Shown here: one piece after another, positions 14,201 through 27,305 of the stretch
Layout of the letters: each line of letters begins with the position of its first letter
Position numbering within the stretch: the first letter of the stretch is position 1
Source: Wallemia ichthyophaga EXF-994
Taxonomy: Eukaryota; Fungi; Basidiomycota
Assembly: GCF_000400465.1 (NCBI RefSeq)
Contig: NW_008806293.1
Span: forward strand, 92,601 to 124,600
Direction: 5' to 3'
Length of the DNA stretch: 32,000 nt
Position numbers and translations under genes: made by a program
Notes under the pieces: generated by a model
Told to the model about the DNA's origin: nothing
Seen by the model: the letters and a program-made list of their open reading frames with translations, nothing else
The model's database searches: none

Positions 14201-15650
14201 CTCTTTAAATGGATATGCAGAGATATCTTTCCCATTTACCCAGAGCACATCGAATACCTTAACTGAGGGGGGCACCATGAGCAATGAAGATGGAGCATGT
14301 GAGCAAGCACCCACATATCGGATGTGTACCAATATCGCCTTTTGCGGCTTTTTTAAGAGTGCCAAAAGGGAGTACGGCGTCAATTGCGCCTGAATACGCC
14401 AGCATTTCTCCATCAAGCACGACTTCATCGACGCGAGAATCGAATGTGGTGTGAATAAACGGTGTAAGGCTGCCATCGGTTGGGGATTTCCCATATAAAT
14501 AGGTATAATCCTTAGCTTTCCTAGGAGGAGAGCATGGCAAATGAGAAAAACAAAACAAAGCAAAAAAAAAAACACAAACCCACCTACTCCAATACTTATA
14601 CCTGTCGCCCTTTCTATGTAGCTGTATGCGCTCGCCGTCCATCTTCTCCTCGACAACCCAGCGGCCGTGCGGCATCTTCTTGTGGACATCGGGGATGGTA
14701 TTGCGCTTGCACAACATCGGCTGGAATACTTGGAAGAGGTGAACGGAGCTATCAGCATCGCGCAGCCGCATACTCGGGTCGTACAGCCTGTAGGCAACTG
14801 TGCGCAAATCTGTCGTCACTTCAAACAGCGCGTATGCATCTGGATGGAATTGAGACAGGATGCTTCTCTCGCGGATGCTAATTTTAAGATTCTTTAGTAA
14901 GATACGCACGAGCCAGAATTGCTCTTCTGTATCGCAACGTTTTGCGAATTCTTTCATGATGTCTTTCTTTCGCTGGCTGTGAATGTGTAAAAGTGTGAGC
15001 ATGATGACATCGTAGTGGGAAAACTACCGACACTCACAAAGACTTGGCGCGCGAGAGCTGGTCAAGCTTGTGATTCACCTCGTCGATGGTAAACGATGAC
15101 TTTGAATCGTAGCTGACGCGGTTTTTCATTACGTCTACCAGCACGCTGGGGAAGTCACCACTGACTGTATGTGCAGCGGTGGGAGCTTTCCAGGAGAGTA
15201 GACGGTGACCATCATTGTGCTTAGGGGAGAGACCGAGTAGCTCAACGTATATCTTTGCGAGGACAGTCTCTTTGATGCCGAACATACTGCGCTCTCTCTC
15301 TCGCTCTGGGATCATCAAGCGGAGTAGATTGTAGAAATCATTGCCGTAATGCTCCCGGTGATACTGCGATAAGACCGATAAGGATGATGACGATAGGCAG
15401 GAGTAACAAGGCCACATACGTCAAACAGCTTCGCCAACTTTAAAGAGCGCATTGAAACATTTTTCTCGTTTGTGATGTTGTCAAAGAATGAGACTAGCTG
15501 GGCGTATTTCATTGATCCAGTATTGGAAACGCCAGCAGGACGCTCAATTGGGTGATATTCAGCGTAAGCAGTGGAGTCCTTTTCTATCCTGATATCACCC
15601 TGTTTACTCGCCGCTGCCTGCTTAATTTCATCTCTGCTGGGCGAGGACAT
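11228..15650 (-). CDS. LIG4: DNA ligase IV (NHEJ): DNA-binding, adenylation and OB domains plus two BRCT domains, about 15 exons
   Basis: Motif I EEKMDGERIQLH, LDGEM, KVFDVLW, EGLVVK, RWIKLKPDY, RFPR. BRCT1 contains LSAQWLLECV; BRCT2 contains VGIEWVEKCY. Starts MSSPSRDE at 15650 and ends YKIKL* at 11230-11228. Confidence 0.93.
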
Positions 15651-15674
15651 GGATGTTGATCACTAACGTTGATT

Positions 15675-16868
15675 ATGTCAACGAGCAAGAGATCTCTCGA
15701 GGAAATAGACGCACAGCCGAAGAAGGCGAGATTTGCAGAGAAAGATAAGCCAGAGAAGAATAATCCAGACAGAGATTTGGACACCACGCAGGATCTGGAG
15801 TACAAGAAGGGGCGCCGCGGGGCTATCAAAACAGAGGGTTATGATTCAGACAGCTCAAATGAGGGCGGCGAGTCAGTCGTGCGGTCGCGTCACAAACCCG
15901 CTGACAACGACGACGATGATATGTTTGGCGATGGTGCGGACAAGCCACAACAGCCCAGCGAAACGGAGAAAGCTAAACCACTCTCGCTCGGTGATATAGA
16001 GGGTCAGGAATTTGGCGGGTACGGTGATAAGAATACGGCAGAGAATAGCGACGGTTACAGCTCTCAAGAAGGCGAGGAGGATGAGATGGGTGGCGAGCTC
16101 AGCGCTTTCAATATGAAGTCTGAAATGCAGGAAGGTGATTTTGTCGACGATGGTACGTATGTCGAGAAACAGCGCGATCCACACGCCATGCATGACGCCT
16201 GGCTTGATAATTCCGATAAGCAGGCACGTAAGAGAGTGCGCGATGCACATAAGGAGAGGTTGAAAAAGGAGCGGGAGGAGTATGAGCGTGTAGAGGCGCA
16301 GAACGCACAAGGAGGAAGGAAAGAGGAGACGATGATGGCGCTGGCAGAGTTCACACAGCGTGGAGAGACTGTTCTCGAGGCACTCCAACGACTAGGCAAG
16401 GATAGGGAAAAATCTAAGAAAAACGGAGCTCAAGAGCTGAAGAAGGCGAGTACTCAAGTGGAGAAGTTCACAGAACTCGTCAACATAATGGTGTCAATTG
16501 GGGTGAATGAGGTGTATGATTGGGAGCACGAGCAATTTGTGAGAGGAGTTCGGAAGTCAGGCTATGTCAACGAGAATTGGGTGCCTAGTCACTATCAACA
16601 GAAGAAGACAGAGACAGTGGATGACGATAGCACCAATGATAGCACCAATAACACAAACGAAACACTATGGGAATACAAACAGTCACCTAATTATATAGCC
16701 ACGCTGCCGCCCGCTCAACGACCGGTAGAGGTACAGGTATTTGGGCCATTCAAACAAACAGAACTGCTTAATTGGGTTCATGGAGGACATCTTGGACCCG
16801 AAGGATCATTCATCAAAGTGCGAAAGGCAGGGGAGACAGCATGGGTCGATTGCAACGAGATATTCTAA
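15675..16868 (+). CDS. LIN1: U5 snRNP 52K / CD2BP2-like GYF-domain protein, single exon
   Basis: First ATG at 15675 (15669 is TTG). Acidic N-terminal half, AFNMKSEMQEGDFVDDGTYV and DAWLD segments, and a C-terminal GYF-like domain (WEYK...QVFGPFKQTELLNWVHGGHLG). Confidence 0.85.
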   Translation: MSTSKRSLEEIDAQPKKARFAEKDKPEKNNPDRDLDTTQDLEYKKGRRGAIKTEGYDSDSSNEGGESVVRSRHKPADNDDDDMFGDGADKPQQPSETEKAKPLSLGDIEGQEFGGYGDKNTAENSDGYSSQEGEEDEMGGELSAFNMKSEMQEGDFVDDGTYVEKQRDPHAMHDAWLDNSDKQARKRVRDAHKERLKKEREEYERVEAQNAQGGRKEETMMALAEFTQRGETVLEALQRLGKDREKSKKNGAQELKKASTQVEKFTELVNIMVSIGVNEVYDWEHEQFVRGVRKSGYVNENWVPSHYQQKKTETVDDDSTNDSTNNTNETLWEYKQSPNYIATLPPAQRPVEVQVFGPFKQTELLNWVHGGHLGPEGSFIKVRKAGETAWVDCNEIF

Positions 16869-16896
16869 TGAAATAACTCGATATATAGTGAAACTA

Positions 16897-17377
16897 CTAA
16901 TGCAGCCATTGTAATCTATCAAAGGGGTATACTATAGCAATGCCTTTACCGATAATAGTACCGAGGCTGATCTGGCCATACTGTCTGCTATCAATTGAGT
17001 GAAAAGTCTCGTCTCCTTGGACATAGCAATGGCCGCGATCGACGTAAGAGTCGTTGATGGTATCGCCATAAAGACCAATGATACGCTTGATAGCCAGTTT
17101 GTTTGGGTTATCTGGAGGACTGAGAGAAGAGTGAGGGAGTAAGAGACCAAAGAAAAGGGACAAACCGTAAAGCGATGATGTCACCGTGCTTGAAATGAGA
17201 AAAAGGGAGCCATTTATTGAGAATTAAGATATCGCTGCTTAGTTTATTTGTATCAGGATTCAGTGAGGGCTGCATTGAACGACCTTTGATTGAAACCAGC
17301 GAGTAGCAGTTGTGGACAAAGTAGTAGGAAACTGATAACAAACCCAGAAACCTTAGTGGCTTGACTGACTGCTTCAT
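16897..17377 (-). CDS. IMP2: Mitochondrial inner membrane peptidase subunit (S26, Imp2-like), 2 exons
   Basis: N-terminal hydrophobic segment followed by GRSMQPSLNP (catalytic Ser), one intron at 17165-17120, then AIKRIIGLYGD (catalytic Lys) and GHCYVQGDETFHSIDSR. Imp2 over Imp1 is judged from the GHC..GDE.FHS pattern. Confidence 0.85.
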
Positions 17378-18036
17378 GATATCGATCGAGATTTAAAGTT
17401 GAGTGTGCAAGACGGAGAGAGGCTGGCGACTTGATATTTGTGGGCGTGTAAGAAGGATTTACAGCTTTCAAAGTCAAATCGCAGAATTTCAATCAATTTC
17501 GTAATTGGTAGCTTGAGATAAGCCTTAGAAATTATTCTGAAGCCAAGGATTCTAAATTTGCTAGTAAGAGACTGTAAAAATAGAAGCTGATAACCAATAG
17601 ACTGGTCTAATAATTTAAAGTATTTGAAATAGTTGCAGTCTAACAAACACCGCTGAATCTGCCTGACTAGATTTGTCGATGGATTCGTTATTTTTAAATC
17701 CTGAGAGAGCAAGTGGAGTTGATAAAGCTCCTTATAAAATTCTGCACCAGTTATTTCAGCTAACCTGCTCAAAACGACTCTAATCTCGTCTTGGTTGCTG
17801 GCTCTTATCGCTGCGTCGAGTGATGACTTGTACACGCCTACTGCAAATTCGTCGATTCTATTTACTGCTATCAATCCTTGTCTGAGCTTTCTAAATCCAA
17901 GTACAACGTTATCTGATTGATTGTCTGATTTATCCCCGATCCCACAGAGATAACGATAATAATCCTCTTGAAATGACTCCTCCTTAAACTCAATCTGGTT
18001 AGATCTCGTCAAACTCCCCAATTTACTAAAGTCCAT
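17374..18036 (-). CDS. Intronless helical protein, probably PCI-fold (CSN8/PSMD8/eIF3k or SAC3/GANP-like)
   Basis: 220-aa ORF with FRKLRQGLIAVNRIDEFAVGVYKSS and a C-terminal NYFKYFKL...IISKAYLKLPITKL segment resembling PCI winged-helix regions. Family call is from recall only. Confidence 0.6.
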   Translation of the reverse strand: MDFSKLGSLTRSNQIEFKEESFQEDYYRYLCGIGDKSDNQSDNVVLGFRKLRQGLIAVNRIDEFAVGVYKSSLDAAIRASNQDEIRVVLSRLAEITGAEFYKELYQLHLLSQDLKITNPSTNLVRQIQRCLLDCNYFKYFKLLDQSIGYQLLFLQSLTSKFRILGFRIISKAYLKLPITKLIEILRFDFESCKSFLHAHKYQVASLSPSCTLNFKSRSIS

Positions 18037-18038
18037 GG

Positions 18039-21000
18039 ATGTTGCGGTGGTTGATCACTTACGTCCAAGTCGGTTGCCGTAAAATTAGAAAAACTTGGAT
18101 ATTTACTGATATTTCACACCACAGTGAACTGGGAATGGCTCAGATTACCTCAGATACCCAACATCTCTCTTCTCCCGTTTGAAATTTCAAAATCCGTGTT
18201 GAGCTATCTCCTTAGATGGATACTGAGAAGGTACATAAACGTAGATACATTTCCAGACAACATCGATGACGCCATTGTCCTCGAAAACAAGTCTCTAAAT
18301 TCCCGAGTTCGTCACGCTCTCTTCTCACCCCCACTCATCTTACATAATCACAGCCAATCAATCAACACCTGTCAAGCTCACCAATTGACGTCATTTCTGC
18401 TAAATTCAATAGGCTATCTATACGCATTCCATGGTCTAACCCGCTCAGCCAATCAATTTCCATTGATTTGGATGGCTTGGACGTGTTTTTGGCACCTTGC
18501 ACAGCAAGAGAAGAAGAACCACACCCACAGCTAAACGTTGACTCCCTCGCTCAACAGTATCTCGACAACAACAATGATTATCCAATCCCTGGATCATTCG
18601 ATGTACACTCTCACTCCGCCACTTCGGCCACCTCAGCTACCTCACAGAGATCTCTGCTTAAATCACTTATAAATGCTATTTTAGCTAAAATCAATGTTAC
18701 ACTCACAAACACCCAAATCACTCTATCAAATAGCGATAGCTCTATTCAATGTAAAATGGCGTCATTAGAGTTCGGTGACGTCGATTTAAGCGCAAATCAG
18801 CGAACTTTCTCTTTAAATGGTGTTGAGCTGTTTACCCACACCACACAGCAGCCACAGCAGCCACAAAGCTCTCAGATGTTCATGAGCGCACAAGAGAGTC
18901 TCCACCAAACTCCATCCACACATCGAATCCTAAACTTGACCAATAAAATCACCCTCACTCTCCAAAATGATTTAAATGACTCAATACCTACGATAAATAT
19001 GGATATTGGTGGTGTAGTTTTGCTTCTCTACCCATCCACCGTTTCCTGCCTTCTCCATCTCATTCAGTCGTTCCCTGTTGCTTCCAAGACAAATGCACAC
19101 ACAGAGTCACGGACAGATGCTCCTTTCATCTTCGGTATCCTCCTACGCCATCTGCGCGTCTTCATTCTCTTGGACGAATTAGACTACATTATCAACGAGG
19201 ATGATCTGTGGAAGGGCACCACCTCTAATTTCCACATACCAGGCTATTATGTCGAGGCTAGCATCACAGATATTGATATCACAGCTCCTCAATGGTCAAT
19301 GACGGTGGGCGACGCCAGCGTAATGGCGAGTGACTCTGTTCGTACATTCCCACTGCTCATTTTCGACGACGCTGTATCAAACGCAGTGTCTAGTGCAGCG
19401 CCCACAATGTCCGACTGGCTGTCAGAGGAAGAAGAGGGCGGAGATGAGCGTATTTACGACAACATGACGTGGAAGCTGCTCAGCACAGACGCAAATGGAG
19501 CAGCTAGTACGCCTCCAAAAAACAAATCTATCATCAAAATGACTGGGAGAGATGTATGCATCTCCTCCACTCACCTATTCGCTGATTTGGCTGTTGTCGA
19601 GCGGTTTTTCGGCAGCGATCTCTTCCAAGCATTGAATGTGAACGTGGCTGCGACTCACGACAGCATTGTCAACTCACTTTTACAAGAGGCAGATAAAAGC
19701 ATTTCACCTGCATCTGCATCTGCTTCCGAAATACTATCACCCCTCCAATCCATCCCTTTCACGCTTACGCTAGATGCTATCAGAGTGTCTTTGCGCTGTC
19801 CACCCCCCTCTCCACACCATCAATTGCGTTCGGGAATTCTGACGATAGATGTGCGCCAGCTTAGTCTCACTCCACTTTCAAACACTCGAACAACCGACGT
19901 TAGCATGGAGTATTCAAATGTATACTGGCTTGATGCGCGTCATCATCATGTATGTAGCGGACCAAAGCGTATTACGAAAGTGGACGCACCGAAGCTAGCA
20001 ATCAAGACGCGCACACACGCTCACTCAACACCTAAACTCACACTGGCTATCCCATACATAGAGTTCGAATTTAGGAGGCGTGAGCTGGTCGGGCTGCAGT
20101 ATCTCGCCGACGACGTGGCTTTGCTAAGCGAGCGTATCAAGGCGAGTAGAGGGAAGGTTGGAGAGAATGTTAATGTGATGCAGTCGGTCGTGGAGCTCGT
20201 CAAGAGTCGGTTAGTGGTTGATGAGATGGCCGCGGATGTGAGTGGTAGCAGCCATGTTCACACTCAAACTCAAGATGGATCTATGCACGACTTCTTCGAG
20301 GCTGAGAATGCTGAGAAAGAAGAAAATCATGGTGACACTGAAGCTGATCTTGATGTGCATTTAGATGCAGGTAAATACATGATAGATGTCCCCACTATCA
20401 ACTTGAGCACGGGGAAGGAGACGGGCGAGTGTTCGCTGGTGGTTGCCGACGTACGCGACATAGACGTTTCGGCAAGATTTCCACAAGATGCACGCAAAAC
20501 GAGCAAAAGTAAGAAGGTTTGAAAATAGTACTGGTGTGTCGACGACGGCTGACGTGCTGCAGGATAGCAAGACAAGTTTCAAAGTGACACTTCTATCGAT
20601 CATAGTGAGAGAGGGCGACAACGACCCACTGGTAGAATCACATCGCCACATGGAGAACCCAGCCATTTATCTCTTTTTCAATGCTTCTGTGTCTAGGAAA
20701 GGTGTGAAGACGTCAGCAGCAGAGATAGTGCTCCACTCGGTGATCTTCAACAGTGACCTCAACACAGATCTCTTGCGTGATATTGCTTTCTTGCTCCAAC
20801 CACCACCAGGGGTGTGTTGCTTTAATATTAGTGGTGGCTACGTCTAACGCACATCTCGGCAGGTCTTCGAGAACGCCGTTCCCTCCGATATCACGACTCT
20901 GGGAGTGCGCCTGAAAGATGTATCGGCGCGCATTTGTCCCCTCACCTCGCAACGTCGTCTCGTCGTCCATTTCGGCAATACCTACATACATTTGACACTG

Positions 21001-25259: not shown

Positions 25260-27305
25260 ATGACCCAACAGCTTTTGCGTGAGTTGCAGGTTTTGCTGGA
25301 GATTTTGAGGACTTCTCTCTGACTAGCTCCCAGCAGACTGGCTATCGTACTCTCGTATAGCAGGACAGAATGCCTATACTATTGTACAGCAGCCGCAGAC
25401 TTACTACGGACCGTCTATTCCGCTGGGCGGTGGATGGGACTACGGTGGTCTAACTTCGCCCACGTCTTCAGAAGGAAGCAGCACAGCTAGCAGTAGCAGC
25501 TCTGGTAGCTCTAGCCAGACTAGTAGCGCGTCAGACGCGTCCAGTACGTCGAGTACGTCTGGTATATCAAACACGTCAAGCACGTCGAGCAACTCAAGTA
25601 GCCAAACTAGTAGCTCTAGTAGCTCTAGTAGACCATCAACTACCTCCAGTTCATCTACCACATCTACCACATCTACCACATCTAGCTCGTCCACCACCTC
25701 CAGCATATCCTCCAGTACCACAAATCCACCAATCACCTCATCCACTACTACACCTCTGCCTTCTTCAAGCACAAGTAGCGGCGTAGGCCCGGCAGCTGGT
25801 GATACAGTTGAGGCAAGTGAGACAAGTGACACTGGCAAAGTGAGTATTTGAACATGCAACTTCGTAGGTCAGAAACTCACACCAAAAAGATACTAGCGAT
25901 AGTGCTGCCTGTCATACTCGGACCACTACTCCTTCTACTGCTACTGTTACTGCTGCGATGTGTATACAAGCGTAAGATGAACAAAGACATAGAGCGGCGC
26001 CAGTTTGAAGTTACACCTTTCCTAGCAACCCATCAAACACGTCCTTCGGATGCAGATGCAGCGCTGTACAACACTGCACCCAAACCGACGCAAACGCAAA
26101 CGCAAGCGCAATCTCAATCATGTCCTAGTACCTGGTTTGCCATGCTGGGAAGTAAGGCAAAGGCATGGAATGAGGAGAGAGATCGAGAGAAAAAATTCAC
26201 TTCGCTGCCGCCTCCACGCAGCCGCGGATTCAAGACAGATTTGTCAATTGAGGATAAAGTAACGCCAGTGCAGCGCCGCCAGAGCAATATGTTCAAGGTA
26301 TCGCCATTGCTAGGAACGTCATCGTCGAATGAGAAGCCATCGCAAAACAGGCCGATATCGCAGACGCAGTTCGGCGACAGTGACGGCTGGTCCGACAACC
26401 AGTCTGATAAGTACAGCTCACCTCTGGACAAGATCCGCCAGATGCGGCTTTCGATGCTGAGCAACCACACGGTAAACGATGACGACAACGAACACGATTA
26501 TCCCAGCACTAGCGCTGGGATGTGGGGATTGGCTACTAGCATGTTTCCTCGTCGCTCAATGAGGGCACAGCCACCACTCAGTGGCAGCGTTGGAAAGAGA
26601 GTTCGACCTTATAAACGGATAGATAACGACGCGTACTCGCTCGCTAACGATAGTAGCAGCAGCAGTGGGGATGCATATTTTCCAATCGTGCCCACTGCGC
26701 GCATTGATGATTTCTACGATAACAGTGCAAGTTCGAAAAACTCGAAAGAGAAGAGTAACTCAAGTGGAAGTATGTCATTCAAAACAAGCAGCCCGTCACC
26801 TATCCCACCGCCATTCGCGTTCAAAACGAACCAGGTATCGCCGTCGATGTCTAGTATGTCTCAGTTCACAAACCACTCCACGAATTCCAACTGGCTTAAT
26901 ACGGAAGAGCGGGAACGCAGAATTGGTACAGCTTCGACACGATCAGGGTCGTACGACACTGCTTCCGAGGGCTATGACAGCAGGTCTGATAGTCGCAACG
27001 CGAGCAGTAACTCTAAGGAGTCGACGCCCGTCTCTAGTTCATCGGATAGCAGTCGACGTCGTCCGCCTGTGTTTCCACGTACTAGCGATACTGTCTTTGG
27101 GCAGATGATAGCAGATAAGGAGAGCGCGTTTGACTTTGGACCTCCCCGAAATGATTATCAGCCTGTCATCGTGGAAGAGGATGAGGATGAGGATGAAAAT
27201 GATGGTGAGGAAGAGGATAGGAGGAGGGAGGAAGCTATGGCTGTCCCTAAGTCAAGGTGGAAAGAGAATGCACGTCCTTTCCGGGGTAGAGGGGGTAGCC
27301 GTTAA
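25260..27305 (+). CDS. Single-pass membrane protein with Ser/Thr-rich ectodomain and long Ser-rich cytoplasmic tail (Mid2/Wsc/Msb2-type architecture); 5' end unresolved
   Basis: The Ser/Thr-rich frame at about 25340-25839 joins through a 50-nt intron (25840-25889, GTGAGT...CTCAC...AAG) to the TM segment ILAIVLPVILGPLLLLLLLLLL followed by RCVYKRK. The start at 25260 assumes a further intron from 25279. Confidence 0.75.
25560..25770 (+). repeat. Low-complexity Ser/Thr codon repeats, including (TCTACCACA)x3
   Basis: Read directly: tctaccacatctaccacatctaccacatct at about 25655-25685, with AGCTCTAGT-type units nearby. Confidence 0.8.

Follow-up and report, generated by a model that had tools for sequence, protein, structure and literature searches.

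The PCI and IMP2 genes

Two genes of Wallemia ichthyophaga EXF-994 that overlap by four nucleotides (nt) are the subject of this work. They lie on the minus strand of a 32,000-nt stretch of RefSeq assembly GCF_000400465.1 (contig NW_008806293.1, positions 92,601 to 124,600 of the forward strand). We refer to this whole stretch as the window and give all coordinates as positions within it. The upstream gene (17374..18036) encodes a putative PCI-domain protein and the downstream gene (17377-16897) a putative subunit of a mitochondrial inner-membrane protease, IMP2. The stop codon of the former and the start codon of the latter are parts of one ATGA, and the sequence from one start codon to the other is free of ATG in all frames. 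How might the second protein be made? W. ichthyophaga is a salt-loving fungus. The first-pass annotation of the window, made from its letters alone, had placed the pair in a fungal chromosome, and the host is indeed a basidiomycete. Wallemia is free-living and has a genome of 9.6 Mb, about three-quarters of it coding (PMC3849046). For comparison we used a set of five Wallemia sequences that represent four lineages: W. ichthyophaga, L001 (a Logan assembly), W. hederae (L005), and L003 and L006, which are close relatives of each other.

The downstream gene is 481 nt long, has one intron and encodes 144 amino acids (aa). Exon 1 (17166..17377) begins in the context atcATGA and codes for the N-terminal anchor MKQSVKPLRFLGLLSVSYYFVHNCYSLV and for the catalytic Ser34 in GRSMQP. 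It is followed by a 46-nt intron (17120..17165, GTTTGT...CAG) and by exon 2 (16897..17119), which carries Lys82 (KRI), GDETFHSIDSR and the stop codon TAG. The splice 17165..17120, joining ALR to PPDNP, is the only one that gives the NCBI proteins and the model length of 481 nt and 144 aa. The product matches Pfam Peptidase_S26 (PF10502) with an E value of 3e-16. Ser34 and Lys82 are invariant in the five IMP2 sequences, the hydrophobic segment LGxLSVSYYFVHNCYSLV precedes the catalytic serine, and conservation of the N-terminus sets in at the RPL motif. The proteins of the set have 142-144 aa and share 60-84% identity with that of the window. Judged by its sequence, the product is an S26 protease, namely a putative IMP2-type subunit of the mitochondrial inner-membrane protease. 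The label IMP2 instead of IMP1 is provisional and leans on the yeast sequences. In L003 and L006 an additional intron stands right after the SMQ codons of IMP2.

The start codon of IMP2 had been described as irreplaceable, and this holds. The next Met is M35, right after the invariant Ser34, and five codons before the ATG the frame is closed by a TAA. Hence no start other than 17377 is possible, unless splicing adds an upstream exon. In all five sequences the base at -3 of the IMP2 AUG is A.

The upstream gene, taken from the list of open reading frames (ORFs), is a single-exon ORF of 220 aa without an internal Met. Its start codon and context (18034..18045, gcaacatccATGG) read UCC AUG G, with U at -3; the nearest ATG further upstream on the same strand is at 18164. 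Pfam reports CSN8_PSD8_EIF3K at 25.7 bits (cut-off 23.7) and SAC3_GANP at 25.3 bits, slightly under the cut-off of 27. The AlphaFold model, with a mean predicted local distance difference test score (pLDDT) of 72, is all-helical plus a terminal winged-helix part. The best match in a fold search of the PDB is LENG8 in human TREX-2.1 (9dlv_A, E 6e-4), followed by Rpn12, yeast Thp3 and Sac3; the TM-scores of these matches are only about 0.3-0.37, on a model of pLDDT 72. A sequence search of the PDB with the same protein gave noise only (NatA TPR matches, E about 0.2). An exhaustive profile search found about 100 distant relatives, and 7 of 10 that were sampled match SAC3_GANP or CSN8_PSD8_EIF3K. 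The upstream product is a candidate small PCI-domain protein of the SAC3/GANP type, with a predicted fold nearest to LENG8/Thp3. For brevity we call its gene PCI.

Orthologues of PCI are present in the four further Wallemia sequences. Compared column by column across the four lineages, amino-acid identity is about 35-60% in most windows of 20 codons and about 70% at the N-terminus; identity to the closest relative is 59%. Where two sequences have the same amino acid, the codon is identical in only about 0.3-0.45 of the comparisons. Between strains of W. ichthyophaga, 3 of 4 single-nucleotide polymorphisms in PCI are at third codon positions. Pfam matches, orthologues and these marks of purifying selection confirm that PCI and IMP2 are real, selected genes, as the first-pass annotation had supposed. 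The introns of the pair differ between Wallemia species, through gain or loss: PCI has two in L003 and L006, one in W. hederae and none in W. ichthyophaga or L001 (the intervals concerned in L003, taking PCI and IMP2 together, are 94-136, 237-280 and 858-908).

Introns occur at other places in both genes in other species, and so one may ask whether the overlap is an artefact of the gene models. An unseen intron might move the PCI stop, alter the first exon of IMP2, or fuse the two ORFs, as in the W. hederae annotation, where both are merged into a single model of 326 aa. In W. ichthyophaga a hypothetical 63-nt intron (GTCGCC...CAG) over the junction would join the frames. However, its donor lacks the G at +5 that all real Wallemia introns observed possess, and it is not conserved. 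The C-terminus of PCI is conserved up to the shared stop, as TLNFK[ST]R[ST][IV][ST]* or, in W. hederae, SVNFRARSFTQ* (the asterisk is the stop). In the model this peptide makes up the final strands of the winged-helix part, with pLDDT 82-87. Conservation right up to the stop speaks against a hidden intron that shifts it. The N-terminal anchor of IMP2 is likewise conserved, and it is required upstream of Ser34. Besides, the annotation of a second W. ichthyophaga assembly (GCA_004918305.1, L041) has a 144-aa IMP2 that starts at the ATGA. We consider an artefact very improbable. The fusion intron in particular was rejected on account of the conserved PCI C-terminus, the IMP2 anchor and the poor donor.

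The ATGA junction

On the minus strand the junction reads AAA TCT CGA TCG ATA TCA TGA AGC AGT CAG. The ATGA occupies 17374..17377. Three of the four bases of this common element make up the PCI stop codon (TGA, 17376-17374) and three the IMP2 start codon (ATG, 17377-17375). The overlap had been noticed at the first reading and is borne out by the minus-strand sequence and by the list of ORFs. It was also rightly observed that no intergenic DNA is left between the genes, since the ORFs overlap by 4 nt.

We looked for ATGA junctions in which one ORF reaches 100 aa or more and the other 60 codons or more, and this one is the sole credible case in the window. The ATGA is kept in 5 of 5 Wallemia sequences (four lineages), W. 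hederae included. The junctions are TCATGAAG in three strains of W. ichthyophaga, ACATGATA in L001, CAATGAAC in W. hederae and ACATGAAC in both L003 and L006. In the alignments the ATGA is constant although the lengths of the PCI C-terminus and the IMP2 N-terminus that flank it vary between species. In contrast to the fixed ATGA, non-coding spacers nearby vary across species, from 11 to 70 nt. Because the case is the only credible one in the window and is kept in five sequences from four lineages whose PCI proteins have diverged, the overlap exceeds chance. On the same comparison, it goes back at least to the ancestor that the sampled Wallemia species share.

Conservation across basidiomycetes had been named as a point of interest. 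It extends through all sampled Wallemia, but in two Agaricomycetes the orthologues of GYF, the gene next to IMP2, are not syntenic, so that no outgroup junction was obtained there. A search of JGI metagenomes with a Wallemia-specific DNA pattern gave no match, and 30 metagenomic loci with IMP2-like proteins had no PCI relative nearby. A more distant Wallemia-like contig (L010) stops within IMP2 exon 1, and no junction was recovered from it.

What does this conservation mean? The first-pass annotation had laid its emphasis on coupled termination-reinitiation. Ribosomes that finish PCI would remain bound to the mRNA and initiate anew at the AUG of the overlap, as they do on the RNAs of victoriviruses, caliciviruses and influenza B virus. 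Victoriviruses and hypoviruses, which are viruses of fungi, use such a restart (reviewed in PMC3542737). The invariance of the ATGA in five sequences, despite the varying lengths of flanks and spacers, fits this idea. Reinitiation would also be a single mechanism that covers those species in which PCI contains in-frame AUGs. However, an ATGA is self-preserving: nearly any substitution or indel in it abolishes one of the two codons. No coupling is needed for the element to be conserved, and the conservation shows that both codons are important, not that their translation is coupled.

Furthermore, the known viral systems require an upstream element within about 32-90 nt of the restart site. This is either UGGGA (the termination upstream ribosome-binding site, TURBS), which pairs with helix 26 of 18S rRNA, or a specific upstream RNA; the victorivirus HvV190S requires at least 32 nt of the latter (PMC3542737). 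Neither UGGGA nor even GGGA is found within 120 nt upstream of the junction in any of the Wallemia species, and no 6-mer in the same 120 nt is common to the four lineages. In none of four species did the 120 nt at the junction fold better than their dinucleotide shuffles (z +0.14 to +0.85), in a calculation without explicit modelling of pseudoknots. The 66 nt before the AUG (17375-17440), the part singled out at the first reading, reach just -2.6 kcal/mol. A regulatory element in the 3' end of PCI was also sought through conservation of synonymous sites, and none was seen in a comparison of four lineages that has low power; identity of synonymous codons there is 0.28-0.36, if anything below that of the 5' half (0.42-0.48). 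Thus the motif is present and its supporting elements (structure, UGGGA, conserved upstream sequence) are absent. Reinitiation would also not predict an ORF 1 free of ATGs, to which we turn below. All in all we regard it as an improbable source of IMP2.

An 8-nt palindrome just before the overlap, TCGATCGA (17382..17389, minus strand), had been mentioned in the same connection. It is there in W. ichthyophaga and absent from every other Wallemia sequence. As a functional element it was rejected for want of conservation, and most likely it has no function.

The ATG-free stretch

Between the PCI ATG and the IMP2 ATG (17378..18033, minus strand) lie 656 nt with zero ATGs in any frame. Dinucleotide shuffles lead one to expect 7.8 +/- 2.2, and zero was reached in 0 of 2000 and in 0 of 3000 shuffles. 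Permutation of PCI's own codons gives an expectation of 5.4-5.5 (P 0.0012-0.0017). When the Met-free protein is held fixed and only its synonymous codons are resampled, 4.1 are still expected (P 0.003). No longer run without an ATG exists on either strand of the 32-kb window (64 kb when both strands are counted), and three strains of W. ichthyophaga retain the stretch. Elsewhere in the window, 13 other long ORFs have 8-27 ATGs per kb, and the IMP2 gene itself has 6 internal ATGs in its 481 nt.

The choice of codons is in keeping with this. Where an Asn, Asp or His codon of PCI stands before a codon that begins with G, it is NAC in 5 of 5 cases, versus 13 NAC and 17 NAT elsewhere in the gene (Fisher p 0.045). 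No codon ending in A precedes a TGY (Cys) codon anywhere in PCI; the lone A followed by TG is the start of IMP2. Synonymous codon choice in PCI avoids making ATG.

Could the stretch nevertheless be a coincidence of composition, with no bearing on expression? It was spotted post hoc, upon inspection of the sequence, and it is found in a single species. Moreover, the interior of the protein is Met-less in three of the four lineages. Yet the deficit persists with the Met-free protein fixed, the dipeptides prone to create ATG show a codon bias in the expected direction, and the run ends exactly at two functional start codons. We think a coincidence improbable.

A proposal for the expression of IMP2

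An explanation has to accommodate an overlap that is conserved, two genes that code for proteins, a lack of ATGs with its signature in the codons, and missing elements for reinitiation. We suggest the following. In a highly compact genome, two functionally unrelated genes would have lost all of the spacer between them and become fixed as a 4-nt ATGA overlap. Transcripts of PCI would then have no place to end before the 3' end of IMP2 and would be structurally bicistronic. A poly(A) site for PCI within IMP2 would truncate the IMP2 mRNAs too, and for this reason read-through from PCI into IMP2 is the simplest outcome. From this geometry, structurally bicistronic transcripts seem likely. On such an mRNA some of the small ribosomal subunits may leak past the PCI AUG, which has no purine at -3 (UCC AUG G). 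The leaked subunits would meet no AUG for 656 nt and would then start at the AUG of IMP2 (AUC AUG A). In another basidiomycete, Cryptococcus, start codon context depends chiefly on a purine at -3, and weak AUGs are widely bypassed by leaky scanning (PMC7049704).

In this proposal IMP2 of W. ichthyophaga would be made by subunits that scan from the 5' end of the mRNA through the AUG-cleared PCI sequence. We put it forward tentatively, as having a little less than an even chance of being right. Three elements of it are inferred: a single mRNA with both ORFs, a leaky PCI AUG, and this route as the main source of IMP2. The first-pass annotation had named reinitiation, leaky scanning and an internal promoter as the options; this seems to be the right set, and within it scanning through PCI gains support from the complete lack of ATGs between the two start codons in W. 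ichthyophaga. A stronger and more general version can be formulated. A bicistronic PCI-IMP2 mRNA read by leaky scanning would be obligatory, and ATGs would be cleared from any neighbour gene, on either strand, that serves as a 5' leader. This version we consider unlikely as it stands, and we mention it for what would follow from it.

A compact neighbourhood

The genes around the pair are packed just as tightly. Their order is DNA ligase (minus strand, ATG at 15650), 24 nt, a GYF-domain gene of the Lin1/CD2BP2 type (plus strand, 15675..16868), 28 nt, IMP2 (minus), the 4-nt overlap, PCI (minus) and ATG2 (plus). GYF is convergent to IMP2. Their stops are 28 nt apart (16869-16896) in the window and 20-70 nt apart in other species. 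With a convergent gap of 28 nt, the 3' untranslated regions of GYF and IMP2 must overlap, antisense, with the coding sequence of the partner. The divergent start codons of DNA ligase and GYF (15650-15675) are separated by 24 nt. Such a gap requires that the leader and the promoter of each of these two genes sit inside the other gene.

At the other end, the PCI start (minus) and the NCBI-annotated start of ATG2 (plus, 18035) share the palindrome CCATGG (18034-18037) in a head-to-head overlap. The annotated ATG2 model requires a short first exon and a predicted intron of about 57 nt (GTCGGT...CAG, with a branch-point-like TACTGAT) in order to reach the conserved frame of the N-terminus (W-LRLPQIPN...).

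A second ATG-free stretch, comparable in strength and 2 kb off, precedes the DNA ligase ATG at 15650. It covers 536 nt (15651..16186, minus strand), antisense to the 5' half of the GYF coding sequence, and has 0 ATGs versus 7.9 +/- 2.2 expected (zero in 0 of 3000 shuffles). In L001, W. hederae and L006 this stretch is absent, the corresponding runs being 18-32 nt. The start codons of PCI (18034-18044) and DNA ligase (15648-15658), both on the minus strand, share the 11-mer CAACATCCATG, which is not found at the orthologous starts of other species; it may be a coincidence or a local initiation context. A further ATG-free run of 417 nt (25437-25853, plus strand) ends at the first ATG of a 485-aa ORF (25848-27305), and with P 0.10 in local shuffles it is not significant.

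Scanning through PCI or a start inside PCI

Several observations weigh against leaky scanning through the whole of PCI. The first of them come from the rest of the genus. In PCI of L001 there are 5 internal ATGs; none is in frame, and they lie in the first 313 nt, with the last 364 nt free. PCI of W. hederae has 4 internal ATGs and 91 free nt before the IMP2 ATG. L003 and L006 have 7 and 6 internal ATGs, in-frame Met codons included, and 63 and 86 free nt. Full depletion of ATGs between the start codons is thus found in one of the four lineages only. The base at -3 of the PCI AUG is U in W. ichthyophaga, C in W. hederae and A in L001 and L006. Given the ATGs within PCI and the A at -3 in L001 and L006, leaky scanning across the whole ORF is not the genus-wide mechanism. 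The neighbourhood supplies two more points. A bicistronic mRNA is impossible at DNA ligase, and so long leaders that begin within neighbour genes do occur in this species. The context caacatccATG, common to DNA ligase and PCI, implies that a U at -3 may not be weak in Wallemia. In the green algae to which we compare the locus below, ORF 1 of bicistronic loci is shorter (median about 290-360 nt), the PCI ORF of 660 nt being about twice as long. Finally, when the exact PCI, IMP2 and GYF proteins were looked up in public assemblies for spliced cDNA contigs, genomic contigs only were returned.

The alternative that profits most directly is that there are separate mRNAs. Transcription of IMP2 would start inside the PCI coding sequence, IMP2 would be functionally monocistronic, and the overlap would be merely the end point of compaction. 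The start would lie far upstream in W. ichthyophaga, leaving a long ATG-free leader, and within about 60-90 nt of the IMP2 AUG in other species. The spacers of this locus are all tiny or absent, in a genome that is about three-quarters coding (PMC3849046), and hence promoters and leaders embedded in other genes must be routine. The 536-nt stretch before the DNA ligase ATG is explicable only by a start site in the neighbour gene. The ATG-free lengths before IMP2 vary (63, 86, 91, 364 and 656 nt), which fits leaders of differing length. Moreover, a single mechanism would then serve the whole genus, and in this respect an internal start is the more economical idea. An internal promoter, as one of the options named at the outset, therefore gains support from the DNA ligase neighbour and from those Wallemia that do not have the ATG-free stretch.

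However, an internal start does not explain why the stretch reaches all the way to the PCI start, though with about one ATG expected per 85-160 nt this objection is a weak one. It needs a promoter within a coding sequence, and no conserved nucleotide element was seen there. Transcripts reading through from PCI would persist in any case and would still permit leaky scanning. We take separate mRNAs for IMP2, with the start at different distances in different species, to be a strong competitor of scanning, only slightly less probable in W. ichthyophaga.

Scanning through PCI and a start inside PCI are not mutually exclusive. The main difference is the mRNA from which the bulk of IMP2 would come.

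Implications

The locus is small and sharply defined. With a 660-nt ORF 1 free of internal ATGs, an ATGA and a fixed start of ORF 2, the different mechanisms give distinct predictions that are easily tested. If the general version of leaky scanning is true, ATG-free stretches that end at a start codon would reveal the architecture of leaders straight from a genome sequence. If such stretches mark embedded leaders genome-wide, they would provide a cheap annotation signal for compact eukaryotic genomes. The question also bears on the polycistronic transcripts of Agaricomycetes and on the way in which their downstream ORFs are translated (PMC4503453).

Public annotations treat this pair in three ways, one of them, that of the second W. 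ichthyophaga assembly, giving IMP2 correctly. The EXF-994 record (scaffold KE007243.1, identical to the window in sequence) has no annotated gene at the PCI ORF. It starts IMP2 (J056_002381) at Met35, and this removes the catalytic serine. The EXF-994 gene models were made ab initio with GeneMark-ES (PMC3849046). In W. hederae the two genes are fused, as described above. The gene finders used seem to drop or distort overlapping genes systematically, and gene sets of compact fungi may be losing such genes in the same manner.

Comparison with known systems

Similar arrangements are known elsewhere, and each of them resembles the PCI/IMP2 pair in part. Bacterial ATGA coupling shares with it the motif and the tight packing of consecutive genes. 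In bacteria, 70S or 30S ribosomes restart at a Shine-Dalgarno sequence. In contrast, PCI/IMP2 is a eukaryotic nuclear locus with spliceosomal introns, and a restart of the Shine-Dalgarno type is inapplicable to it. The viral AUGA and UAAUG systems (victoriviruses, caliciviruses, influenza B virus) have the same kind of four-base stop/start overlap, and victoriviruses and hypoviruses have fungal hosts. Unlike them, PCI/IMP2 has neither the UGGGA of a TURBS nor a specific upstream RNA of at least 32 nt.

Microsporidia and nucleomorphs have lost intergenic DNA, so that transcription starts and ends within neighbour genes, and this trait is the same as that of the Wallemia locus. We know of no description of ATG clearing of a neighbour gene in these organisms. 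As for Wallemia itself, a search of the literature on polycistrony and genome compactness in the genus found no paper on overlapping or bicistronic genes. Among the titles and abstracts retrieved on fungal polycistrons, AUGA reinitiation and overlaps in compact genomes, there was no ATGA-overlapping pair of nuclear fungal genes.

Closer to Wallemia in phylogeny are Plicaturopsis crispa and other Agaricomycetes, which produce polycistronic read-through transcripts; how their downstream ORFs are translated was left unexplained (PMC4503453). Here as there we deal with tandem genes of a basidiomycete. Co-transcription is established in the Agaricomycetes, and we infer it for Wallemia. The Agaricomycete ORFs, unlike PCI and IMP2, do not overlap, and no signature of leaky scanning was reported for them in that study, in which Wallemia was not included (PMC4503453).

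Closest in design are the bicistronic loci of green algae, which combine a depletion of ATGs before ORF 2 with a weak context of ORF 1; in Auxenochlorella protothecoides leaky scanning has been supported experimentally by mutagenesis (PMC11291117). The Chlamydomonas and Auxenochlorella loci and PCI/IMP2 have in common conserved ORFs that follow each other on the same strand without space for another promoter, a shortage of ATGs before ORF 2 and perhaps a non-optimal start of ORF 1. The algal ORFs are separated (median 40-183 nt), whereas PCI and IMP2 overlap by 4 nt. The algal mRNAs and their mechanism have experimental support; PCI/IMP2 is known as a genomic sequence, with a depletion that is complete in one of four lineages. 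Leaky-scanned bicistronic nuclear genes and polycistronic transcripts of Agaricomycetes are already known, and to these the PCI/IMP2 pair may be added as a clean, conserved and testable candidate.

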